Source: Trichosphaerium sp. ATCC 40318 (Eukaryota > Protista > Tubulinea). From it: a stretch of 64,000 bases of DNA. The notes below the pieces were generated by a model. That model saw only the letters and a list, made by a program, of their open reading frames with translations. It had not been told where the DNA came from and ran no database searches. Where the stretch lies: NCBI GenBank assembly GCA_038496445.1, contig JALMLS010000076.1, positions 124,001 to 188,000 on the forward strand, given 5' to 3'. The position numbers and the translations under genes were made by a program. Of this stretch, positions 1 to 62,715 are shown piece after piece; position 1 is the stretch's first letter; every line of letters starts with the position of its first letter.

Positions 1-286
1 CTCTTTGGCATAAATGAAGTTCATTTGATGAGCTGCCGTATTAAAGATGAAAGCATTAAGTATTTGACAGGTGCAAAGGTTGTCAATTTTTTCAATACAA
101 ACATAACAGACGAAGGGATTAAACATCTTCATTCAGCTACAGCTACGTCTTTCATATACAAATATTACTGATGAGGGTATCAAGCATTTGAAATCAGTTG
201 TGCGTCTTTATATTATTGGATGCAACATATCAAAAGATTGCACTGATTCATTGCCTAATCTTAAGTATTGTTTACGTTCCAAATAA
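1..286 (+). CDS. 3' end of an intronless leucine-rich-repeat protein (similar in style to the F-box/LRR genes at 39.9 kb and 61.4 kb), with a frameshift near 139
   Basis: Frame 1 reads ...IKDESIKYLTGAKVVNFFNTNITDEGIKHLHSA. After a 2-nt deficit at gctacagcta it continues QLRLSYTNITDEGIKHLKSVVRLYIIGCNISKDC...RSK* (TAA 284-286). LRR periodicity is 21 aa. Confidence 0.8.
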
Positions 287-783: not shown

Positions 784-2081
784 TTATTCTTCTTTTATTT
801 CTTCGATCCTAGGTCCGTCCCGCCTATTATATTTTTAATGCTGTCTAAATTTACGTGTGCCAACTCAATAAAAGAAACTTTCAAGCTTTTTTTGTGGGTG
901 AACCAAAAAAGAAAAACTGTTTGTACAAAAAAAAAAATAAAAAAAATCGAGTTGGCACACTGTTATGTACCTTACGTTGCCTCTAGCTCCTCCTTGAGCT
1001 TGTCCTTGACCTTGTGGTGCAGCTTGTCCGCCAACACCGGCAAAGTTTTGAATCAAACGTGGTACTAAAAGAAAGAATAAATCTCAACGCAAAAAAATAA
1101 TAATTTAAGGTTCTCAGTTCCGTTATAACAAAAAACTCCTCTGTGGTCTTAAAAATTATGTATTATGGTAAAAATACGACCAAACAATTATTGACGAAAG
1201 CGAAAAAGTCAGGTCTAGCAGCGAGAAAACTTCTTTTTTAAAAGCAGTGAATATAAAGAGAAATATGATCGTACCCATAATAGCAAGACCCATCATGATT
1301 GCCATACCGTATTTAGACCAGAAAGTCTGTGGTGGTTTGTAAACACGCTTTATAGCTGCTACAGAGACGATTCCCTGATGAAAAGACAAGTCAGAAATTG
1401 TGTTAACAAAAGGGTAAAAAATTTTACAAAACAATTTGTTTGCGCTTACCTCTGCGTTGTGGATAGATACAGTAAGGGAAATAGGAGATGTGATGTACAT
1501 GGTGTATGTACCTGGTGTACCAGCAAGGTCAGATTCGAAAGCACCTTGGGAAACCATTGCGCCCTTAGACAGAAAGCGGTAAGTAAAAAGGACTGATGGA
1601 GTTTTTTTTGTACTTTTGATCTGTTAAAGAAATCAAACGAGAAAAGCTTTTTAAGATCAGCTTCAGCGTCGTCGGCAATGTCGGCATAGTAGACAGCACC
1701 GTTTGAGTTAGATTCAAATTCCCTACGCTGGTGATGAGTCATATTTACAAAAACATAGTGATTTAGATCTATGGCTCTTGAGAGGCAATCATGACGTACA
1801 TGTTGATGGCGTATTCAAGGTCATTTTCAAAGTCAGTATATTCTGCTTTTAGGTCGCCGGCGTCGTTTGTTACGTTCATAAATACGCGTACGACATCACC
1901 TTCGGTTGCGTATTCCTCACTTTTACTAGTTTTTGAAATCTCTAAATCCCACTCTCTGTAGTACTATCATCAGCGTATAATACTGTTAAATTATATTATT
2001 GACGTACCCAACTAATAAGCCGCGTACATCTTGTCCAGCTACCAAGCCAATTACGCACAGAACTAATAAAAAGCGAAACAT
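784..2081 (-). CDS. Type I membrane protein of unknown function: signal peptide, lumenal domain, EMC10-like juxtamembrane segment, Gly/Gln-rich tail
   Basis: Seven exons splice in frame: MFRFLLVLCVIGLVAGQD...KPPQTFWSKYGMAIMMGLAIMVPRLIQNFAGVGGQAAPQGQGQAQGGARGNVRRDGPRIEEIKEE*. The FWSKYG+TM segment resembles the EMC10 C-terminus (weak). Confidence 0.7.
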
Positions 2082-3555: not shown

Positions 3556-4060
3556 TTACTTTTTCTGACTGTTGGCAAGAAACTTGCTAAGTTTGTGATT
3601 CATATCAACAGCTGTTCTATGTCCACAGCATCTACATCTGAGTTCAAGCTAGATTTAGCGTCAGCAAATGAACATAAATTAATCTTCTTGGACGTACTTG
3701 TCGTCTCTTATAAACTAGGGTAGTTTCTGGATACTCACATGATCCACACAGTACAAACTTGACAATGAACTTATCAAGAAGCAGTGCTAGTTTACGGCGA
3801 GATTGTTGTCCTCTAAGGGTGAACAAGATGTTTTTCTCATCACATGAAGTTCGTGTATTTAGTTCTATTGAAAAAAACTTCATTATCTGCTTTGGTGTTC
3901 TTTCCAGCGCAGATGCAACTTCTTTAAGGTTGTCAATACAAGTAGTAGATCCACTTTTAGATATAATCCTTATTTTCAACCCCGGCATCATGTAACGATA
4001 GAAAGGATCGTACACGACACGCTGGGATGGAGGGATTGGTATTTTCTTTGTAGTTGTCAT
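3556..4060 (-). CDS. Stand-alone eIF5/eIF2-beta N-terminal domain protein (about 150 aa)
   Basis: YDPFYRYMMP, NLKEVASALERTP..IMKFFSIEL, LLDKFIVKFVLCGSCEYPET, then an intron (~3650-3697) and LELRCRCCGHRTAVDMNHKLSKFLANSQKK*. The C4 zinc ribbon is intact; there is no W2/HEAT domain. Confidence 0.85.
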
Positions 4061-5797
4061 TTTGCATAGCCGGCATAAGGTGGTTGTGTTGTTTGAGGTT
4101 TGGTTAGAACAAAAGAATTGTGAAAACTTCGCTTCTATGAAACGGAGCAAGCATGAGAAAAGAAGCGGAAAACGCCACTTGGCTTTCGCTTTATCAGTGA
4201 AATCCTAGTAAGTTTCAGCACCAACAATAACAAAGTGTATAAACACATACAAAGACGTTACTTCGAGCGTAGGCGATAATTGGCCAATAGGCACTGGCAA
4301 CGTCAAAATCATTTTGTCATTTTCGGCCTTAAATTAATCAGTCAAATCTAGCTGGTTTAAGCCCTTGTAAATGAGATGGGAAGGCCTTTCGAGCATTGAT
4401 ACATTATCCTTCACCAACTAAGATTACCAGCAGAGCCCATGCTAGCACATCTAACTTTGCTATCTTTTATTAGATTGCCATTTCTGTCTGAAAGATCCCT
4501 CTGCAGCCCTAAACGTATATAGATTTTTGCGGCTTTGAAACTTGGACAGTACTACAGTACGACAATAGAGACAACTTTGTTCCATAGGTTACAAAATATG
4601 GCAACAATACGGAGTTCGCTCAGTAGCACATTCCTTCTTCTATACCTCACTCTAAACTTTCACCTTCACAGAAAGATGCTACTACACCATCAATGTGTTA
4701 CTTTACTATCTACATAGCTTTAGTAGTTCTGTTTAAGACTAGATACACAGGTTTGTTCTAGTATGGGTAGAATCACTTTTTTCCGGTTGTTGAGTGACTT
4801 CGTTTCGTGCAATATCAGCTTAGCTAACCTTCATGTCAAAGGAACATACTCCGCACTCGCATCTAATTTTAGGTTACATTCTACGGAGATATAAAGCACT
4901 GTTTTTAGCACGTGCTGTTTACAACTTAATTTTGATAAAATTGTTTGACAAATGTTTGATACATTTTACTACGTGTAGAATTATGGCTTATTTCGCGTGT
5001 TTGTTGAATAGCGGAGCGTAATAGAGCCTTACAGTCCACAATAGAGGTATACAAACACTAAAAAAAACCAAGGCAGAAGTACCAAACTTTGTCTCGCCGT
5101 ACATGACTTATTTCTGTTCTAGCGGCTACTAAAATAACGAGAAAAATACCATCAAATGTTTGAGTACAGAGATAAAGTTATGCTAAATTGACACGCGTCA
5201 GTACCACGTTCAACACTTTTCAACTCAAAAAAAGAACGAATAAATCTCATCACGTGATGTCCAATTTTGCTCGTGAACGAGCCAGCACGGCGTATGTTAA
5301 GGAACGTAAACTGTCTGGCTTATACGGTCTTAGCACAAGCTGGCGGAACCTTGTACCCTAGAGTTTAAGATGGAATACTTTGGGTTTTGCCTAAGAAACT
5401 ACCAGAACACAAAAGACACTCGTACACACATGTGCGTATACATCCGAAGTACTTGCAGCCACCAGCGCACTTTCACCGGAGTGAGATAGGAACGCGGAAA
5501 CAAAAGTATCGAAGGCCGATTATGGTCTAGTATTGTCAAACGGAAGTTCCTCTTTTGCTTCGCACCCAAGGTCAAAGATTACAGAATCTTCATTGACAAT
5601 AGGCTTGACAAGAACTTTTTACCTTTTACTCATACAATAGGCTTTGTGGTTAAAAATACAATTGATAATGATAGTAAACGTGCACAACTTTGTTAAAATC
5701 TGGCTTATCACACTTAAGATTTTAAAACAAAATTAGTGTACTGTAGACACTTCCTCAATATCTGCAGATCTGCCAAAAATAACATACATAACAAACA

Positions 5798-8248
5798 ATG
5801 GCAACGTATCCATTTGACAATAAAAGATCAAGTACAATACTGTATACTATCGTAATTGTCTCTTTAATAGGTACGAACTTTTACTATTCGGTTTCCCTTG
5901 TTGTTGGCCTTTGTTTTTTCTTTTTTCCGAAGTGTGGGCCTTTGTTAGAGATTGAAACATTATATACCTTTTCTTTCGAGTACGGAGAGTATATACACGA
6001 TAGGTAGACGCGTTGAGACTCGTTTTGACGCGACTACACTGTCCTAGCGCTACCAACTTGCGAAATTTCGTCAAACGTCCAAAAAACGATCTATATCACG
6101 TGATACATGTATTTGATGACGTTTCAAATCGTTTCTATCGCTTTTCGTAGCTTACATATCTCGCTAAAAGACCGAGATATTCCTCACTTCAAAAAAATGT
6201 CAAAGGAGCTTCAAAACAACTCATCTCTATTTTTTTAAAAACGTGGAAAGTCTGTTCAACATATCGTTGTTCATGGAACACGTGTTTTGTTGTGCATTTA
6301 CAGAATCATAAAGTCTTTCTATTTTGATACACAAACATTACCTACATTGTAGACTTACTTGTATTTAATAGCACAAGCCATTTGCGCATATCCTGAATGT
6401 TCGGGGAACACACAGTGCACATCAACATGCAGTGCAGCCGGAAAATGTCTCGGCAATTCAAAGTACAGCAGATGCTATTGGTGTGGTGTTCGTAAAACCG
6501 GTGAAAACCCATGTAAGAATGGCGGTGTATGTATTGGATGCTCCGACGATGAAGTATGCATGTGTCGGGCGGGATACGGAGGCCGCTTTTGTGAGATAGC
6601 TTTGGTACGCCATGAGCAACAATTTGTTTTTTTGAATTGACAAAAAATGCATCAACATTTTCTTGACTTACACTTTGAATAGACTGGTGGTATACAAACT
6701 GAACACCCTACAACACTTCCACCAATGACTCTACCGCCCACAACACCTTATCCTACTTCAAGACCGCCAACAATGCGTCCTACAACATTACCTCCAACGA
6801 CAGAGCCGCCAACAATGGTGCCTACAACAAAGGCTCCTACAACACGTTCTCCCACAACACGTCCGCCTACGAAACAGCCAACTACCGCACCTCCGACTAC
6901 AGAGGCACCAACTATGCCAACACCACCTACAACGTCCGCACCAACAAAGGCTCCAACAACAAAGCCACCAACAACTAAGCCTCCAACTAAAGCGCCAACA
7001 ACTAAGCCGCCAACAACCAAACCTCCAACAACTAAACCTCCAACACGGCCACCTACAACCAAACCACCAACAACTAAGCCTCCAACGACCAAAGCGCCAA
7101 CAACAAAGCCACCAACAACTAAGCCTCCAACTAAAGCGCCAACAACTAAGCCACCAACAACCAAACCCCCAACAACTAAACCACCTACAACCAAAGCACC
7201 AACAACGCGCTCGCCAACAACCAAAGCACCAACTAAAGCGCCAACAACAAAGCCACCAACAACCAAGCCTCCAACCTTAGCACCTACTCAGCCACCTACA
7301 ATAGCACCAACACCATTACCAACAGAGACGCCTGATCCGGATGTTGATGAAGGAAGTCAATGCGCTACAAGCGTACCGGATAATCTATCTAAACAAGAGG
7401 AAGTTCGCTTTAGAACAAATATGTACAGATGTCAGCACGGTCTCAAGGAACTAACAATGAACGACAAACTAACACAAGCAGCCTATATGCACGCAAAGGA
7501 TATGGCTGAGAACGAGTTCTTTAATCATAAGAATTTAGACGGTAAAACACCTGCTGATCGCGTTCAAGATGCAGGATATAGGCAATTAGGCGTCGGAGAA
7601 AATATTGCTGCAGGGTACGCTCAACAAGAGAAAAAACACAAAACCAGTAAAAATCGTGATTTTGTACTGAACTTTTCTCAAACGAAAAAGACTTTTGTTT
7701 TATCACGTGATTTGTTGGAACTTTTCTATCGGGCTTTTTTTTTGGAATCGTAATGATCGTTTGTGTTGATTATTTTTTTAGGTTTCCTACTGCACAGTCT
7801 GTTTTAAGAGGTTGGGAAGCATCGAGTGGTCATAGAGCGAATCTTCTTAATGATTACTGTAAGTAAAGAAAACAACTTTTATCAAAAAATCACAAAAGAA
7901 AAAGACAGAAGTTTTTTTTGTTCTACTTTCTGACCTCAACAATCGAGATTTTTTGTACTTTTACTATACCATTGTTTTACGTGGAATGGCATAAGATGCC
8001 GATCCCTTTCCCAATTATTTTGACAATAAATCGAGAGCGTACTCATTCTTTTTCTAGTCGAAGAAATCGGTGTCGGTTATTACGAGGACATGTACTCTCC
8101 TTACAGATACTACTGGGTCCAAGTATTCGCTCTACCGAACAAACTCAAGCGAAGCATCGGCGAAGAAGAAATTTCTTATGTGGTAGTTTCTCATGGCGTA
8201 ACTGCTGACTCTCAAACGTCAAGTATATCCTACTTCCCAACTGTGTAA
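5798..8248 (+). CDS. Secreted EGF-like + Pro/Thr mucin stalk + CAP (SCP/PR-1) domain protein
   Basis: The signal peptide spans intron 5871-6371 (TILYTIVIVSLIAQAICA). EGF: PCKNGGVC...CMCRAGYGGRFCE. CAP motifs: TNMYRCQHGL, AAYMHAKDMAENEFFNH, GENIAAG, WEASSGHRANLL, EIGVGY..YWVQVF. Stop at 8246-8248. Confidence 0.88.
6700..7330 (+). repeat. Coding tandem repeat, mainly 15-bp (PPTTK/APTTK) and 12-bp units
   Basis: About 40 imperfect units such as ccaccaacaactaag, with synonymous third-position variation. Confidence 0.95.
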
Positions 8249-39932: not shown

Positions 39933-40900
39933 ATGATGTCCTGTATTCGTGAGATGGAACCATCAAACGCTTTAGTTAAGGACAAATCGAGCGATACATC
40001 GATTTTAGACTTCCCTTCAGAGATAATCGCCAATTTACTTCAGTTTGTGGCCGTTAAGAATCGATTTGCCGTTTCTCAAAGCTGTAAACGATTATCAGAC
40101 ATCATACACCACCACGTTGGCTATGGAACAATAAAGGTTAAATCAAGTTCAGATTGCTCTGGTCTTTCAGGAAGTCCTCTTCTCAAAAACACCATCATAT
40201 CTTTTTTGTCCTTCTTGGAAGCAACAGACAAAGATCTTTCTCTTCTTTCTGGTGTTCAAACGCTATGCTTGCAATGTAACTACAACATAACAGGATCAGG
40301 ATTGATGTCTATCTGTGGTGTACGTCACTTGACTGTGGTACAGTGTACCAACATCAAATACTCAAGTATTGCACCACTTGTCAAACACCTCAAATACCTT
40401 CGTTTGTATTGGATTGATTGCAACCGTTTAGACCCTGTTGATGCAAAATTATTTGCTGGAATACCACATATTGATGTATCGCAAACTGCAATTACAGATG
40501 AAGTATTGTACTCATTAGCTGGAGTACATACAATTAATTTATCTTATTGTCAGCATATAACAGAAAAAGGTATTAAAGCTTTGGCTGGTGTTCATGCCAT
40601 AAATTTGAGATACGCATCAGTAACAGATAAGCTGTTAAAGCTTTGGTTGGTGTACACGCCATTGACCTTACAGGTTGTCATAGTATCACTGGAGAATGTA
40701 TGAAGAGTCTCGCAACTGCTCATACAATTGATTTATCAAGAACAGAGGCAACAAATGAGTGGCTTACACAAGTCCCTGATGTAAAGGTATTACACATTCA
40801 TAAGTGCCCACATGTAACGAAAGACATAAGAGAAATTCTCAAAAACACTGTAATACATGGCATATGTACTGATTGGTGGTCAAGTCTTGGTGAACCTTAG
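39933..40900 (+). CDS. Intronless F-box + LRR protein (1-nt frameshift at about 40630)
   Basis: F-box ILDFPSEIIANLLQFVAVKNRFAVSQSCKRL and repeats AGVHTINLSYCQHITEKGIKAL. ORFs 39933-40703 and 40643-40900 join if one A is added to gataagct. Confidence 0.85.
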
Positions 40901-43707: not shown

Positions 43708-44021
43708 TAATTGAGTTTGCAAGTTAAAAAAACGCTCAGTTGGTACACTGAACCCGAAAATAGAAAGTATGGCTCAAAAAATGTTAAAATGGAGGTATAG
43801 TTAAATATGAAGCTTTCTAGACGAATCAAATGCATAAAAAACCAATTTATTTCACAAAAAATCAAAATGGTATTTTGCAATCCGGACAGAAGAGAAAAAT
43901 TGAGATAGAGTTTTATTTACAAAGGGGGGTTGGTGTCAAAAAAAAAAAATGAAAAAAAAAGCCAGAAACTTTTTTTTTTGTTGTGTTGAGTGTTTTCTCC
44001 TTTTCTTTCTTTTTCCTCTCT

Positions 44022-47000
44022 TTAATTACGCATTTTCGTTTCATAGAACTCAATGAGACGTAAAGGACAGGCTTTTTTAAGGATCTCTGAAGGGAATACA
44101 CTCGTAGAACCGTCAAGCCTAATAATTATTTGAGTACTCAACTAGTATTTGTGATGTTATAAAACTTGTTACAGACAACGTCAATGAAGTTGTCAAAAGA
44201 TGTCACAGATGAATTTTTTTCTTTTCAAATAAAAGAAAACCGTTTTGCTTTTGTGCTTTCTTTTTCTAGGTGTAAATATCCTTATTTTTGAATGACGTAC
44301 ATTTCAGCTGCAATATAACTTTTACCATTTGAAAAGTGTAATGTACGTAGCTTGTGAATGTTGTTTGGGTCACTTGTTCCTTCTCCTACCTCATACTGTG
44401 CTATAATTTTATTCACAAAGCTTGCACCAAAAGACCTCTCAAGTGAGTCCCTAGGCCACCATAGAGGATCATTATTTTCTATAAGAATAGAGTAAGCGCG
44501 TTTCCTTTTTTTGTGGATTTTCTATCTCCAGAAAAATAAAATAAAATCCTCCAAAAGGGTTCGAGTACACAAAGGTACACGTATATAAAACTTGTTTTAA
44601 AAATTATTCTCAAGGTTGTCATAAAAAAGACAAGCAAAAAAAAAAAAAAGAAGAATATCCTTTTTGAGTTTAAACTAAAGATTACCTGGTATGTCTTTCC
44701 ACTTTATCTTAAACACTCTTTTATAACTAGCTTGTAGAATTCTTTCAGGCACATTTTGTTTAAAAGCATTTAAAGATGATGCAGGAGAAGATCGCTTTGG
44801 CGGAGTCCCTTTTCGAGTTTGTTTAGCGCTTTGTTGTCCCTTTGAAGGTGTACGCTTGGTCCTCTTTGGAGGTGGACCATCTATCATCTGGGTGGATCTA
44901 CGCTTTCTTGTAGTGGCAGGTCGTGGTTTAGAATCATTTGGAGGCGTAGCTAGTTGGTTTTTGGCAGGCGCTACAGGCTTGTATTCTTGAAGTAGCTGTT
45001 CAAAGCCATTTTTTACTAACACTGTTTCATGCACCCATGAGTCTTCTTCTGGGGCTGTATCTTTCCAACGGACCAAGTAATCTGTAACACCATTTTTATG
45101 ACGTCGGTTGATAATAAATTGAGGTTCTAAACGAGCCACGTGTCAGAAAACAGTACGCACATAAAATTAAAAATAAAAAAGTTCTTTGTCAATTTTCTAG
45201 TCATGTGACATTTACCATATGGTCCACGAGATTTTCTTCTGGTTTGAGAAGTCTTTTTTGGTGCTTTTTTAGGTGTCGTTTTCTTTTTTTTTGGTGTTTG
45301 TGTTGTAGCCTTTGTCTGTTTTTTTGGTGTTTGTGTAGTAGCCTTTGTCTGTTTTTTTGGCGCTTGTGTAGCAAGCTTTGTCTGTTTTTTTGGTGTTTCT
45401 GTTGTAGCAGCCTTTGTCTTTTTTTTTGATCGTACTACTGCTGGTTTCATATGAATGGTCAAAATCGGTTCTGTTTGCCATTGCATATTAGCTAATGGCG
45501 CTTGATATTGATGTCAGGGAATAAAGTAATCAAACAGCAACAAAAAAAAAAGTTGGATTGAAAAAGAAACTCCTTTCTTCTATCCGTACATTCTTTTGCT
45601 TCTTTCACATCCATCAACACTTCCCTAGAGTCAGCTAACCATTCAGATACACTTTCATCATCTAAAAGAGCTCGGGCATGGCATGTGAGAATCTGATTTT
45701 CAGGTACAACACCTACAAACTTGTAGTTAGCCATTTTGACGCGAAAAAAATTAGCTAACCAGTCTCTTGAAATACAGCCCATTTTAACGTGATCCCGGAC
45801 ATGTTTTTATGTGCACTGGGCTCTGGTATGATAATAGTTACAACTTCATCATCTGGGCGTAAAGGCTATCACATAAATCAGGACATAAAGTCTTCACAAA
45901 AAAGAATCCAAAAAAATGCAATTAAAAAAAAAACTACTTACCATCGGGTTTGATTTTACGGCGATATTAATTTGTCGCACCGTCGTGTATTCCATCCTTA
46001 CACCAACAAATCCTTGATCCTTATAATTTTAGTTAGCTGGATTTTGATGAGGAGAAAGGAACTCAAAAATACATGTGGATTACCTTATATGATAGATTCA
46101 ACAATTGTTCTCCGTATAATTCTACTTCTACACAAAATATAAATTAGAAAACAAACGATACATAATCCATAATAAATAGGGATTTTGGATTTCACAATTG
46201 TTACGTAACAAGTCATCATTGTGACGTATATAAATTTAGATTTCAAAACAACTTTGTTAAAATAAAAAGTCCATCACGTCAAGGAAATGATGATTTGATG
46301 GCAGCAGTCTAAATATATACACTTACGGGACTTTTGTCTATCTTCATCAAATGTTAACATATATAATATGTTTCCTTGGCGCATTTCACACTAAAAAGAG
46401 CTTGGTGAGTACAACAGTAAAAGAATTAGCAAAAAGAATTAAAAAAAAACAACTTCGATTTAACTTACCATTTTAGGTGTGCTGTTCGGATCTAATATGT
46501 TAACTTTATATGTATCAATATCCCAAGTATAGAACAATACTCTTTTATTAAGCTAAAACAGGATTTAGGGTTGGGATTAAAAACCACAAAGAAATAATTC
46601 CTTACTTGCTTGTACAGCTCTATAAAACCTCCTTTGCCAAACCTTTCAACCTCAACTGGGAATGAAGCACATCCATCTGTGTTTGTTAACTCAACTACAA
46701 CGGTTTTTTAACTTCAGCATTATCATTAACTGTTTTGTGTCGACGTATAGGCGCTTAGCATAAAAACAAAAAAAAAACAAACAACAAGCTTTTTTTTTTT
46801 CTTCCAAACACTAAAAGCCTTGTTAAATCAGTACCAACTTGTGGAGTTATAATATCCTTATCAAAACCAATCTTAAACGCAGCTGGCTTGTTGCTAGATT
46901 TAATGCCGACCTCAATTGTATCACCCTCGTTACCTAAGGAGGACAAAGAAGTTAAAACCGTGGTGTTTTGCGTGACGTACAAGAAAAAAAGAAATGACGG

Positions 47001-47670
47001 TCCGCAGATTCCGTGTTTTCCTATAAGACCGTTAGCACGTATAACGTACAGAGAATTAGGCGTATGTCAATCAATAAAATCGAAGAATAAAACTTTTCGA
47101 AAAATGGTTTTTATCAAAAAACACTCAAACCCTCAATACCTCATCAAAAGCTTTTAATCCAGCGAATGGGTGCGTATTCTGTGCTTTAAGATCAACTTGT
47201 ACATACTCATTTCTTACACAGCCACCATCAACCACTAATGTTTTACTATTGCGCTCTGGTGCTGTTAAGAAGTTGTAGAAATGAATAAATGTGGAGTTGA
47301 CGTTTATGTCCGCAACGCCGTATGTATCATAGCCTTTGTCTATTGTTTCTACTACACGTAGTTTACGAGCCGCAGTGTATTCAGAAAGCCTATTTGTTGT
47401 TAAAACCTTTTTTAACCGCTTTTTGTGACCTACATTGCTAGTTTATCATCTCTGCTCGCTAGAAGACCCCATGGCTTATCAAAGGTACCAGGTGCAAGAG
47501 TAGACTTCATTTGTTTAGCGATGCAACTTGTCAAGAAAGCTATTTGTTTAGTGCGTGTCAGCTTCATTTTGACGCGTTTAGGGCTATCAGCGAACACGAC
47601 TCGACAATTCTACAATAAAATTTAGGTATTTAGTGTTAATTCATATATTTACGATGGTAGATGGTATCAT
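44022..47670 (-). CDS. Ubiquitin-like domain(s) fused to an HP1-like module (TPKK repeats - chromodomain - chromo-like domain - chromoshadow domain)
   Basis: About 16 exons splice in one frame. Ubl: QINIAVK...LKWAVFQETGVVPENQILTCHARALLDDESVSEW. Chromodomain: YEPQFIINRRHKNGVTDYLVRWKDTAPEEDSWVHE. Second chromo-like domain: VPERILQ...FKIKWKDIP...LWWP. Chromoshadow: SVFPSEILKKACPLRLIEFYETKM. Confidence 0.75.
45255..45422 (-). repeat. 30-bp coding tandem repeat (T-Q/E-T/A-PKKQTKAT)
   Basis: About four copies of ttgtgt(a/t)gtagcctttgtctgtttttttggtgt on the + strand, plus two degenerate PKK units. Confidence 0.9.
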
Positions 47671-47933
47671 GGCGTATGTTCACTATGATTGATGGTTTTT
47701 CTGGGTTTTTTTAAGCTCAAAATCTTTCGGTAATATCACCAGTAAAACCAGCGCGTATGAGAGTATTCATGTATCGTTTTTTTGGCACTTTGATTTAAGT
47801 CAAAAGCGCTTATGCCAAAAAGAAGCAAAAAGCCTTTACGACTTACTAACGCGTTGCTGAAACATGCTTTAACTGTACAACATTACCATTTAGACATACT
47901 ATTACGTTTGTGGTTGGGGTAGCTCTCTAAAAG

Positions 47934-57738: not shown

Positions 57739-60700
57739 ATGCAACTACTCAGCACTACGCTAGTACTTGCTATACTATTAGTTACCGTATCTCATGCGGT
57801 AAAGTTTCAAAACGCTGCTCTTAACAGCGAACTAGCAAACTTTGTACATTACCCCCATAAAACTATTACAGAACACTATGACGTCGTAAAGGTACACAAA
57901 GTTCTTTACTTGCGCTTCCGTAATATTTTTAACCTTTTACACCAAACAAACGCATAAAAGCGTTCTATAAAACTTTTTCGCATCTTTGTGACAGAGTTGC
58001 GCGTTTTAATTTCCTATTATCCGAACTTCCTTCTACTCTATCGCAACACGCTCAAAGTAGTCGTAAAGTCGTTCTTCTAGCCCAGTTCATCAACTTATCG
58101 ACTTTAGACTGGCCCTGGTGCTTCTTTCCCTTTCACATCTCGCCCTCGATTTCCAGATGATGGAGAACTTGACTACTTTCCAATGCGTGGTTACGGTAGA
58201 AACGGTGCCGCTCTTGTCGATTTTGACGGAGATGGTGATTTGGACGTCTACTTGACAAACGCGTTCGGACACGAAAACAAACTTTACATCAACTTGCTCA
58301 AAGAGGTACGCAACACAATAACAACCAAAATACAGAAAAAATAGCTATTTTTTGGCCTTTTAGCCTTTTTTGTAGAGTTGTAGTGTTGTAAATTGGTAAC
58401 TAATTCTCCTTTTCTAGTGTGGTACAATGGACTTTGTAGACGTAACATCAGAGATGTGCGCAGATTTACAAGAACATGACTCAGCTGCTGTTTGCTTCGG
58501 AGATTTCGATAATGACGGTTTGGATGATATTGTCGTAATGGGACACGATTCTACTATTGAATCTGGTATCCGAGTCTTACAGTGCGTAAAAAGTTTTCTG
58601 ATTTTTACCTTTTTTCTCCGCCTTTCTCCTTTCGTAAATTAAAAAAACTTTTTCCGCTTATATTGTCTTTTCTAGTGGTAAGAAGAGAGCTGGTAACGGT
58701 AAACGAATGAGAAAAGGTGATTGTAGATTCCAACTAAAATCAACCTTCGAAGATATCTCTGTATCTTCCGGTATTCTCCATGATGGTTACGAGAAGTACT
58801 CTCCTTCCTCATGTACTATCGCTGATTTCAACTCTGATGGTAAACTCGACCTCTTCGCCACTACAACATGGACAGATATGACCGACGGTTCTCTTATCTT
58901 CAACTACGAAGAAGAGAGACTAACACACAACATGCTTTTTATGCAATCTGATACTCCTTTGGTTTTTACCGAAGAAGCTGAAGTTCTCGGTCTACAAGCA
59001 CAAGAACTCATCGGAATTACATGGGCTGCTGGTGCCGCTGATTACGATGGTGATGGTGACGTTGATCTATTCGCTGTTGAAGATCAAGCTGCTTCTTTCA
59101 ACACACAACAAAGCGAAGAGTTCGGTATTGATAGAGGATACGTCCGTATCTTTAAAAACAGACTCGTCGAAGACGGTGCTCTCTCTTTTGAAGACGTAAC
59201 ACTCGAAAACAATATCCCACCTGCTGATTACATGTCCATCTCCTTCGGAGACATGAACTGTGATGGTACGTAACTCTACAACAAACAATCTTGTTTAAGA
59301 AAGAAAAAATTTTCTTCCCTTTCTTTTTTAAGTCCTTGGACTTTTTTCCTTTTTCAGATTTTTTCTTTTCTCTTTTTTTTTGGAAATAAGTTACTGATTT
59401 CGTTCTCTTACTTACCTTTTTCTCTTTAGCTAATATCGATTACTTCTCTGCCACCTTCGGTGACTACACCCAAGTCGACAACGTACCAGCATTCGCTCCG
59501 TACACACAACCAAAGGAAACATCTCGCTGGAGATACTGGAACGGAACCCACTTTATTGACTCATACGACTCAACTCCTAAAATCGGTGGTCTTATCTCTA
59601 CTCCTTTCGGTTGGGGATCAACAGTAGTCGATTACGATAACGATTTCGATCACGATATTATCTTCCACGGTGGTCTCCACACTGGTCGTTTTGTTGATTT
59701 GAACCCTGGTGCTATTTACCAGAATCAAGGATGCAAAGGCGGTAGAAACAGATTCAACATTCTCTTCGAGCGTGATGCTGAAGCATACCAACATGTTGAA
59801 GCAATCGGTAATCCTTTCATCTACAATATGATCAACAGTGTCCTCGCTGGTGATATGGACGGTGATGGTTTCAACGACATCGTATTGACATCTAGCTTCG
59901 CTAGACCAGAGAATACAACTTATTCCGTGTACGCTGATGACCTCGGTGTCGGTAACGGAAGTGACCGTTTCCCAATCGCAAACTACACCGGTTCTGCTTT
60001 CAACGTAGATTACGGTAAATGGCAAAACTGGACACCACTTGACCCTCTTGACCCTGATCCACAAGAATTCTTCTGGAACGGTATTGAAGAAATCCCAGAA
60101 GGTCGTGTATTCCTCCTTAGAAACGACGGAGACGTCTCACACAGTAAGTTACTCGAAACCTTTTTTTTTTTTTGAATTCTGCGGAAACTTTTTTTTGTTT
60201 TTGATTTCCTTTGACTTACTCTTTTCTCTTTAGAGGGTAACTCTATTCATATAACTGCTCTCGGTACCGGTGCTATTCTACCACATGGTGTCGTTAACAG
60301 AAACGGAATTGGCGCTTCTTTCGTCTTGAAACCGAGAAAGAACAAGAACAAGCTTAAGAGATTCTCTACAATCAACCCAATAGTTGGTGGATCAGGTTAC
60401 GCTGGTCAAGAGTCTCTAGCTAAGACTGTTGGTATCAAGAACGCCGAATACGCTGACATTGAGATGCGTTGGCCTACACCTACAGGTGTATTGATAAACG
60501 AGGTTAAATGCGTCAAACAAGGGACTAAGATCATCTTCCCTGAAATACCTTGTGATATTACTCATAACGTATGTCCTTACGGAGAACCTTTGGCTGGATT
60601 CAGAGGATTCACTAAATGCGTAAGAACCAACTTGAGAAAATTGAGAAGATACCACGAAATCACTGCTCAACAACAAGCTAAGTTGTACGCTGGTATGTGC

Positions 60701-61374: not shown

Positions 61375-62307
61375 TCAGTCACATATGCCACGTATTACTG
61401 TGTTTTTGAGTTTTTTCCTTATGTCTTTTGTTATTTGTGGGCACTTGTGAATGTGTAATACCTTTACATCAGCTAGGTGGGTAAGACATTCATTTGTTAT
61501 GTTGGTATGTGATAGATTAATTGTATGAGCAGTTGTAAGGCTCTTTGTACACTCTCCAGTGATTTGACTACAACCTGTGAGGTCTATTGTATGCACACCA
61601 GCCAATGCCGAAATATCTTTATCTGTAATCTGAAAACAATAACATAACTTAATTGTATGTACTCCAGCTAATGCTGAAATACCTTTTTCAGTTATATGCG
61701 CACAACAAGATAAATTAATTGTATGTACTCCAGCTAATGAGTACAACACTTCATCTGTAATTGCAGTGTTTGATAGATCAATATGTGGTACTCCAGCAAA
61801 TAATTTAGCATCCTCAGGGAATAACAAGCTTATGTAATCATTCCAGTACAAATGAAGATATTTGAGGTGCTTGGCAAGTGGTGTAATACTTGAGTATTCT
61901 ATATTTTCACACTGTAACAAAGTCAAGTGACGTACACCACAGATAGACATTATTCCTGACCCTGTTATGTTGTTGTTACTATGAATGTATAGCGTTTGAA
62001 CACCAGAAAGAAGGGAAAGATCTTTGTCTGTTGCTTCAGGGAAGGCCCACAAAGATATGATGGTGTTTTTGAGAAGAGGACTTCCTGAAAGACGAGAGCA
62101 ATCTGAACTTGATTTAACCTTTATTGTTCCATAGCCAACGTGGTGGTGTATGATGTCTGATAATCGTTTACAGCTTTGAGAAACGGCAAATCGATTCTTA
62201 ACGGCCACAAACTGAAGTAAATGGGCGATTATCTCTGAAGGGAAGTCTAAAATCGATGTATCGCTCGATCTGTCCTTAAATAAAGCACGTGATAGCTGCC
62301 GATCCAT
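61375..62307 (-). CDS. Intronless F-box + LRR protein (close paralog of 39933-40900)
   Basis: Uninterrupted ORF with F-box ILDFPSEIIAHLLQFVAVKNRFAVSQSCKRL and AGVHTIxL repeats. Confidence 0.9.
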   Translation of the reverse strand: MDRQLSRALFKDRSSDTSILDFPSEIIAHLLQFVAVKNRFAVSQSCKRLSDIIHHHVGYGTIKVKSSSDCSRLSGSPLLKNTIISLWAFPEATDKDLSLLSGVQTLYIHSNNNITGSGIMSICGVRHLTLLQCENIEYSSITPLAKHLKYLHLYWNDYISLLFPEDAKLFAGVPHIDLSNTAITDEVLYSLAGVHTINLSCCAHITEKGISALAGVHTIKLCYCFQITDKDISALAGVHTIDLTGCSQITGECTKSLTTAHTINLSHTNITNECLTHLADVKVLHIHKCPQITKDIRKKLKNTVIRGICD

Positions 62308-62715
62308 AAGAACAATCACTAGATATTAGGCGCTGCGCTTACTTGAAGTTAAGGGCGTCTTCGTGTAAACGTTATGGGAAACAACACGTTTTGTGTTTAA
62401 GGCTGTTCCTTAATCTGTTGTTGTTAAGTTTCAATGTAAAAGTCAGTAACCAACCAGTTTCAGACTCAAGAAAAGTGATAAGCTGGTACAAGACCCAGAA
62501 AAGATATCAACAAACGATTAAAAAAACAAGTCAGCTAGTTATGGAAGTCTATAAACCTGGTTCTATTTACAGACTAGAAAAATACAACTTTATAAACCAA
62601 TACTCGCGGCAGTAAAGGGGATACAAACGAAAGTTAAGTCCATCAACAAAACCAGAAAAAACCTGTTCGTTTTTGTCCAACAGCTCCATATCGGTCACAC
62701 GTCAAACTATTAGGA

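Follow-up and report, generated by a model that had tools for sequence, protein, structure and literature searches.

Evidence for a divergent HP1-type module joined to a constrained orphan N-terminal region in a single gene of a marine amoeba

A 16-exon gene on the minus strand of the window (the whole 64-kb stretch of Trichosphaerium sp. DNA analysed here) is best explained as joining, in a single mRNA, a divergent HP1-type module, a TPKK linker and a selectively constrained orphan N-terminal region; we put the probability of this reading at about 0.6. On the same reading, the sequenced allele probably encodes a protein of 723 residues whose C-terminal 240 residues form the divergent HP1-type module. 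The positions of all features are collected in Table 1.

Gene structure and splicing

The coding sequence forms a single continuous frame of 723 codons, running from the ATG at 47670 to the stop codon (TAA/TAG) at 44022-44024. Junctions read from spliced public-run contigs divide the gene into 16 exons and 15 introns of 43 to 207 nt, every one of which (15/15) is bounded by GT..AG. This agrees with the preliminary description, in which the gene had been spliced by hand into one frame with GT-AG introns only and with exactly the limits 44022-47670. The contigs add a micro-exon of 40 nt at 46981-47020 to the hand-spliced model, and they correct its exon 12/13 intron, for which the acceptor is found at 45501/45500, giving the protein sequence ...KEAKE-S-PLANMQWQ.

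Two junctions of the hand-spliced model had been singled out for checking. Near 45715-45760, the X2 and X3 contigs remove 45713-45759 as a 47-nt intron. Near 45490-45590, position 45590 is joined to 45500 in the public-run contigs, and the same junction, together with every downstream one, is independently present in L001 and L002, two transcript contigs from JGI. A model with two separate genes, the first ending at the TAG at 45755 and the second starting at the ATG at 45734, is rejected because this stretch belongs to the spliced-out intron 45713-45759. The two halves of the protein share one exon, since the last part of the N-terminal region, the TPKK array and the first cage Tyr of the chromodomain are all encoded within exon 13. 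No paralogue of any exon was found within the 64-kb window.

Table 1. Positions of the gene, its exons and the observed or putative features of its product, in window coordinates
Feature	Position	Strand	Remarks
mRNA unit	43900..47791	-	5' end ~47791, 3' end ~43900-43965; spliced contigs
Short upstream ORF in 5' UTR	47717..47770	-	ATG 47770, 17 codons before stop; sole 5'-UTR ATG listed
Coding sequence	44022..47670	-	723 codons, 16 exons; from transcript-contig joints and ORF length
Exons 1-4	47653-47670 (exon 1, coding part), 47434-47609, 47140-47389, 46981-47020	-	
Exons 5-8	46835-46933, 46606-46694, 46469-46552, 46327-46390	-	
Exons 9-12	46084-46127, 45942-46019, 45760-45865, 45590-45712	-	
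Exons 13-16	45216-45500, 44686-45126, 44301-44478, 44022-44118	-	
N-terminal orphan region	46084..47670	-	Residues 1-288, exons 1-9
Claimed N-terminal beta-grasp	residues ~8-80	-	Putative; inside the exon 1-9 region
Claimed Ubl	45444..46019	-	Putative; residues ~300-410, exons 10-12 and start of exon 13
TPKK/APKK repeat array	45254..45428	-	33-nt (11-aa) unit, 5.2 copies; TRF score 204
A7 run (T7 on the plus strand)	45385..45391	-	First repeat unit; fusion frame depends on run length
Chromodomain	44978..45126	-	Pfam PF00385; first cage Tyr encoded by the final codon of exon 13, 45217-45219
Basic hinge	44720..44977	-	K/R-, P-, S- and T-rich; includes PPPKRTKRTPSK
Second chromo-like segment	44430..44719	-	RVFKIKWKDIP/ENNDPLWWP; split by 207-nt intron 44479-44685
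Chromoshadow domain	44025..44375	-	C-terminal; split by 182-nt intron 44119-44300

Transcription as a single mRNA

The X2 contig (record 3; 2334 nt) spans 44003-47780 unbroken and contains the whole gene. The X3 contig (record 4) covers 45321-47791, the X1 contig covers 43965-45077 and L001 extends to 43900. Past 47791, the sequence of X3 continues with 19 loose letters whose reverse complement resembles a cDNA template-switch oligo, and which we take to mark the 5' end of the cDNA. Spliced N-terminal transcripts were also sought in the JGI metagenome contigs with two exact patterns, taken from exon 11 and exon 12, neither of which had a match. The locus is one gene, transcribed as a single mRNA.

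The public-run contigs also bear on the idea that an internal promoter gives rise to a second, HP1-only protein that would be the main functional form. An in-frame ATG at 45486, 14 nt into exon 13, would open such a product (MQWQTEPILTIHMK...), of about 325 residues and with the classical HP1 layout plus a TPKK tail, and the X1 contigs cover the 3' part of the gene only. Nevertheless, no contig begins at 45486, the exon 12-13 splice is present in three independent contigs, and the one cDNA 5' end that could be mapped lies at 47791 (although contigs cannot show starts). We regard two products of this kind as unlikely.

The C-terminal HP1-type module

The chromodomain proposed in the preliminary description is clearly recognized by the Pfam Chromo profile, with a score of 42.8 bits (E 5e-11) for a cut-off of 25.1, and of 41 bits when the Tyr encoded upstream of the intron is included (L001:270-480). 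Its best solved relatives in a sequence search of the PDB are CDYL, CDY1 and CBX5. Alignment to CBX5 and CDYL indicates that two of the three aromatic cage residues are kept, a Tyr and a Trp, while the third position is occupied by Thr (VRWKDT versus LKWKGF). The predicted basic hinge is likewise evident from the composition of residues 561-600, where 12 of 40 residues are K/R and a single one is D/E.

The second chromo-like domain of the hand-spliced model does produce a match to Pfam Chromo, but a weak one that stays under the cut-off (14.3 bits, E 0.039, profile positions 16-42). In P0002, a protein fragment of the organism itself, this segment corresponds to the second of two Chromo stretches. 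The C-terminal chromoshadow domain holds up on the same fragment, which scores 24.3 bits with Chromo_shadow (PF01393) for a cut-off of 22.4, over the second half of the profile only (positions 28-51 of 52). Exon 16 alone reaches an E-value of 1e-4 with this profile, and the chromoshadow structures of Chp2 (E 0.057) and Swi6 (E 0.14) are weak matches. The protein ends in ...FYETKMRN, to be compared with ...FYEERLTW in CBX5, and thus has Asn followed by the stop where CBX5 has its Trp.

With exon 14 or the 250-residue HP1 module as query, word searches returned P0002 alone, and the AlphaFold2 (AF2) prediction of the module was therefore run with no alignment. The resulting model, with a pLDDT of 41, is too poor to confirm the chromoshadow fold. 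The earlier designation of a complete HP1-type module is thus correct in that chromodomain, hinge and chromoshadow domain are all present, but not as regards the aromatic cage, the C-terminal Trp and the extent of the chromoshadow profile that is matched. With Thr as the third cage residue and a chain that terminates at the Trp position, methyl-lysine reading and PxVxL-type partner binding both appear uncertain from the sequence. Compared to the window, the C-terminal part of X2 has four non-synonymous and two synonymous changes, small numbers that fit weak constraint.

The TPKK linker and the length of the A run

The TPKK repeats reported previously are readily found as a tandem array of 5.2 copies of a 33-nt unit, in which four TPKK and two APKK motifs occur in an 11-residue repeat. 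The array is lysine-rich and disordered according to the composition profile, with 15 K/R and no hydrophobic residue among the 40 residues at 441-480. The copy number differs among transcript contigs, X2 being 33 nt longer and L002 33 nt shorter than the window.

The first repeat unit includes an A run on which the fusion frame depends. The run is A7, in frame, in the window and in the X2 contig, and A8 in X3, L001 and L002, that is, in three of the four transcript contigs across the site; the additional base of X3 is a T inserted behind 45384. With A8, the frame of the N-terminal region stops 38 codons on and the chromodomain frame has no ATG. The fusion frame is then broken, and the full-length protein may therefore be produced from just part of the alleles or transcripts.

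If A8 were the prevalent form, the product would be confined to the N-terminal part, with about 470 residues, and the HP1 ORF would have been disconnected recently and be decaying, or would be reached via recoding, either by transcriptional slippage or by a +1 shift at the A stretch. The assembly, with its A7, would then represent one allele or contain a homopolymer error. At their remaining A7 and A9 runs the three A8 contigs agree with the window, the rest of L001 has 99.7-100% identity to it, and the four non-synonymous and two synonymous changes in the C-terminal part are compatible with decay. However, the X2 contig, derived from short reads, has A7 and remains in frame through an exon 13 of 318 nt. 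The chromodomain frame, which lacks an ATG, moreover stays open over about 310 codons, something that would be hard to maintain at 37% G+C unless the frame is translated as part of the fusion, and neither the Chromo nor the Chromo_shadow match is disrupted. We consider the prevalence of A8 unlikely to be the correct reading, whether it is combined with decay or with recoding.

A constrained N-terminal region with no detectable relatives

Over codons 1-395, the X2 haplotype differs from the window by six synonymous changes and one non-synonymous change, a ratio with a binomial p of ~0.001 relative to the neutral 1:3 expectation (our own calculation). The N-terminal half of the protein is under purifying selection between these two haplotypes. 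In the composition profile, folded-like N- and C-terminal parts flank linkers that are basic and poor in hydrophobic residues, and residues 1-288 are probably folded since hydrophobic residues are abundant there.

Pfam searches with all exon pieces gave no match for exons 1-12. A query with exon 3 against 1.84 billion representative proteins found no real relative. P0001, the single hit of this search, is spurious, as it is a secreted Cys-rich protein of 2044 residues in which 17 near-identical repeats sum up weak matches. Look-alikes of exons 2 and 3 in the ESM Atlas yielded no usable match, and exons 2, 3 and 12 had no counterpart among PDB sequences at E-values up to 10. Comparison of the N-terminus with the remainder of the protein for internal repeats gave a low-complexity match only. 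Taken together, the N-terminal ~400 residues are a probably folded and selectively constrained region for which these searches detect no relatives.

Putative ubiquitin-like domains in the N-terminal region

The preliminary description assigned a clear ubiquitin-like (Ubl) domain and a possible N-terminal beta-grasp domain to this region. Neither assignment gained support from the tests carried out here, all of which were run exon by exon and are therefore weak; both putative domains are split over three to four exons. No exon piece matched a ubiquitin-clan Pfam profile at E-values up to 1, and no exon scored above shuffles with a local HMM derived from the ubiquitins of giant viruses (77 sequences). 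In a Smith-Waterman comparison of exon 12 with ubiquitin, VVPENQILTCHARALLDDESVSEW aligns on ubiquitin positions 36-59 with a shuffle-controlled p of 0.15. Collinear chains of exons are also at chance relative to ubiquitin, with p = 0.19 for exons 10-13 (Ubl2) and p = 0.83 for exons 2-3 (Ubl1). AF2 prediction of exon 2 alone, with no alignment, consists of one helix only and is of poor quality (pLDDT 55).

The protein could nonetheless contain one or two genuine N-terminal Ubl domains, in which case a Ubl-HP1 fusion would bring partners of the ubiquitin-receptor, proteasome or p97 type to chromatin bound by HP1. Several observations are consistent with such domains: the local alignment independently finds the register claimed earlier, the hydrophobic strands, the EPS turn and the final alternating strand (ILTIHMK) are collinear with ubiquitin, the helix predicted for exon 2 sits at the position expected for the beta-grasp helix, and the region is under purifying selection, with three of three X2 changes in the claimed Ubl region being synonymous. 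On the other side stand the chance-level alignments, the HMM scores no better than those of shuffles and the blank Pfam, PDB and Atlas searches (at the exon level, where they are weak). Moreover, Ubl2 would require insertions of 11 and ~20 residues. We consider the Ubl domains doubtful on this evidence, and the proposed recruitment of ubiquitin, proteasome or p97 partners depends on this putative domain call. Even more tentative, and in our view improbable, is a combination in which N-terminal beta-grasp (Ubl) domains are present and the length of the A run, as an allele or through slippage, decides whether the HP1 module is attached, giving a tethered and a free form.

Comparison with known chromatin proteins

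HP1 proteins are almost always short adaptors in which a hinge links a chromodomain to a chromoshadow domain. The amoeba protein has the same order of chromodomain, basic hinge and C-terminal chromoshadow domain as HP1, Swi6 and Chp2 (CBX1/3/5 for the HP1 proteins), exceeds both Pfam cut-offs, and finds the structures of CBX5, Chp2 and Swi6 among its PDB sequence matches. It is however much longer, with 723 residues compared to ~200 in the HP1 family, as the 400-residue orphan region and the TPKK array precede the chromodomain and an additional weak chromo-like segment precedes the chromoshadow domain. It also differs from HP1 in the replacement of the third cage aromatic by Thr and in the stop codon at the position of the C-terminal Trp.

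The best-scoring solved chromodomains belong to the CDYL/CDY proteins (2dnt, E 3.4e-05; 7n27, E 5.6e-05). The CDY family has a C-terminal enoyl-CoA-hydratase-like domain and no chromoshadow domain, whereas the amoeba protein has no hydratase-like domain. A likeness to UHRF1 and UHRF2 (Ubl-tandem Tudor-PHD-SRA-RING), namely a histone-mark reader with an N-terminal Ubl, would exist only if the Ubl is real. The reader module of the amoeba protein is of the chromodomain/chromoshadow type, and no exon piece has a Pfam match to Tudor, PHD, SRA or RING, so the protein is not a UHRF1-like member.

S/TPKK motifs are minor-groove binders of AT-rich DNA and fit the CDK consensus [S/T]PxK. The TPKK and APKK motifs of the amoeba protein recall those of histone H1 and sperm H2B, but there they are located in histone tails and here in a linker inside a chromodomain protein, where their binding and phosphorylation are putative. 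As the preliminary description supposed, the architecture appears to be undescribed: no relative with the same architecture was found in papers or databases, and neither the search of 1.84 billion proteins nor the word searches revealed an orthologue in which the fusion is conserved.

A possible mode of action and its significance

In the most likely mode of action of the 723-residue protein, chromatin binding, methyl-lysine reading, dimerisation and the contribution of the N-terminal region are all inferred. Tethering to chromatin would be provided by the HP1 module together with the two basic stretches, with the chromodomain contacting a histone tail and the TPKK and hinge stretches contacting AT-rich DNA or RNA. 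CDK-type phosphorylation of the TP sites could tune these latter contacts, and the chromoshadow domain would permit dimerisation. The lineage-specific N-terminal region may then be the effector or partner-binding part that is carried to chromatin.

The A7/A8 discrepancy bears on the annotation of the genome and is a candidate case of domain-fusion control at the level of alleles or RNA. If the Ubl assignment is true, no HP1 paralogue with a built-in connection to the ubiquitin-receptor machinery would have been described before, and the protein would form a direct link between the reading of histone marks and ubiquitin receptors, with no E3 ligase involved. If it is not, the gene would encode a lineage-specific chromatin protein with a putative effector part. 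The association, in a transcribed gene of a little-studied marine amoeba, of an HP1-type module with a constrained region of 400 residues that has no known relatives would represent a new effector arrangement for heterochromatin-type readers.

Gene model and transcripts

Alignment of public contigs to window positions 43900-47800 revealed spliced copies of the gene in three sequencing runs (X1, X2, and X3), where all the skipped stretches read CT..AC on the forward strand, corresponding to GT..AG for a minus-strand gene. The X2 contig (2334 nt) covers 44003-47780 and lacks all 15 introns; the X3 contig, from the same sample, covers 45321-47791, and X1, from a separate study, is identical to the window across the last three exons. 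Once the tabulated shifts of the cut positions were applied, the introns (43-207 nt) begin with GT and end with AG in 15/15 cases. The spliced frame, which starts with the ATG at 47670 and closes with the stop at 44022-44024, comprises 723 open codons and reproduces the continuous GT-AG-spliced frame of the preliminary description at exactly the same coordinates. Three-frame translation gives short open pieces in a chain on the minus strand. The G+C content of the eukaryotic genome containing this stretch is 36.7%.

Transcript contigs L001 and L002 from JGI (sample 3300016894), retrieved via P0002, a fragment of the organism's own protein, provide independent evidence of the exon 12-13 junction and every later one. 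A model with two genes, one terminating at the TAG at 45755 and the other starting at the ATG at 45734, was considered and rejected, since both codons lie inside a 47-nt stretch that is removed as an intron. The X3 contig carries 19 loose letters past 47791, whose reverse complement resembles a SMART-type cDNA template-switch oligo, indicating that the runs are cDNA and that the mRNA starts near 47791. The gene model is confirmed; its single uORF and the neighboring ORFs are listed in the table.

Predicted features flanking the coding sequence or elsewhere in the window
Feature	Position	Strand	Remark
COX7B-like	1159-1557	-	weak match
eIF2-beta/eIF5-type domain	3647-4150	-	E 2e-24
Proline-rich extensin-like region, then CAP (cysteine-rich secretory protein) domain, one ORF	6725-7750	+	
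F-box and leucine-rich-repeat ORF	39933-40700	+	Pfam F-box, LRR_6
uORF, 17 codons	ATG 47770	-	5' UTR; only one
FG-GAP repeats	58707-59270	+	
F-box and leucine-rich-repeat ORF	61378-62319	-	Pfam F-box, LRR_6

The HP1-type C-terminal third

Profile searches confirm the HP1-type module. Exon 14 matches Pfam Chromo with 42.8 bits (cut-off 25.1), and P0002 (221 residues, 99% identical) matches both Chromo and, over profile positions 28-51 only, Chromo_shadow with 24.3 bits (cut-off 22.4). Between these two domains, the proposed second chromo-like segment (RVFKIKWKDIP/ENNDPLWWP) does match the Chromo profile, but weakly (14.3 bits, E 0.039). The closest solved structures of the chromodomain are CDYL, CDY1, and CBX5, while the terminal domain has weak matches to the chromoshadow structures of Chp2 and Swi6. 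The module had been called complete; both Pfam families are present, but alignments with the solved relatives show that the third cage aromatic and the C-terminal Trp of HP1 are missing. The cage retains Tyr, encoded by the final codon of exon 13, and Trp, with Thr in place of the third aromatic (VRWKDT vs LKWKGF). Word searches found no relatives for an alignment of the module, and the AF2 model obtained without one has a pLDDT of 41, so that no structural conclusion is drawn.

Strong basicity and a scarcity of hydrophobic residues characterize both the hinge and the TPKK array. The TPKK repeats were recovered as 5.2 copies of a 33-nt unit (45254-45428), and their number varies by contig, with one unit fewer in L002 and one more in X2; in L001 the array lies at 93-268. 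Such variation reflects either a minisatellite within the coding sequence or the assembly of repeats.

The putative ubiquitin-like region

Both putative beta-grasp domains are interrupted by three or four introns, and ubiquitin likeness was tested exon by exon. From ubiquitin genes of giant-virus contigs, 77 distinct ubiquitins were extracted and used to build an HMM, against which no exon scored above chance relative to 1000 of its own shuffles. Local alignment does reproduce the register on which a clear ubiquitin-like (Ubl) domain had been proposed, placing VVPENQILTCHARALLDDESVSEW on ubiquitin 36-59, but shuffle-controlled Smith-Waterman scoring of exon 12 (p = 0.15) and collinear chaining of exons 10-13 (p = 0.19) are likewise not above chance. 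The possible N-terminal beta-grasp domain is not supported by chaining of exons 2-3 (p = 0.83); the AF2 model of exon 2 consists of one helix and zero strands. Many true Ubls are not detectable from sequence, and these exon-level negatives therefore do not refute a beta-grasp fold. At present the clear Ubl is a visual impression, with an estimated chance of being real between about one in four and one in three. The ubiquitin link and the proposed recruitment of ubiquitin, proteasome or p97 partners to heterochromatin are hypothetical.

The N-terminal 400 residues

No Pfam family was matched by any N-terminal exon piece, and PDB sequence searches with exons 2, 3, and 12 and Atlas look-alikes for exons 2 and 3 were blank. 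The region is nonetheless real coding sequence: across codons 1-395, the window and the X2 haplotype differ by 6 synonymous and 1 non-synonymous changes, a split for which we calculate p ~0.001 if a neutral ratio of 1:3 is expected. This half of the protein is an orphan under constraint.

Exon 3 (83 residues) had a sole match, P0001, among 1.84 billion representative proteins, a collection without the organism's own protein, which was also missing from the results. P0001 is a secreted, Cys-rich protein of 2044 residues with 17 near-identical repeats of ~120 residues, and was rejected as a relative: it reached E 7.6e-23 solely by summing weak repeat matches, and also drew spurious Pfam names. 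This case is a caution about scores inflated by repeats.

The fusion frame across the TPKK repeats

In its first repeat unit, the fusion frame crosses a run of seven A (T7 on the forward strand, 45385-45391). The window and the X2 contig have A7, and X3, L001, and L002, that is 3/4 transcript contigs from two independent samples, have A8. With A8, the N-terminal frame stops 38 codons on (...KKKENDT*) and the chromodomain frame is severed, with no ATG of its own ahead of the domain. General slippage is unlikely, as the remaining A7 and A9 runs of exon 13 are the same in all copies. An assembly error is possible and recoding could be involved, but the clear heterozygosity of the samples makes an allelic difference more likely: X2 and X3, from one sample, differ at exon-3 sites, and X1 breaks at a variant at 44933. 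Two observations argue for translation of the fusion from some alleles at least: the open chromodomain frame extends over ~310 codons of AT-rich DNA, and X2 carries an exon 13 of 318 nt in frame throughout. In the C-terminal part, 4 changes are non-synonymous and 2 synonymous, small numbers that fit weaker constraint.

Comparison with known proteins

No paper describing a ubiquitin-like domain and a chromoshadow domain in one chain was found by full-text searching, where co-occurrences correspond to separate PRC1 and UHRF proteins; no domain tested here resembles UHRF1. Unlike HP1 proteins, for which a complete aromatic cage is defining, this protein has an incomplete one, differs in length and architecture, and ends at the position of the HP1 C-terminal Trp. 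By two Pfam gathering scores, it nevertheless belongs with the HP1 family and would work like its members.
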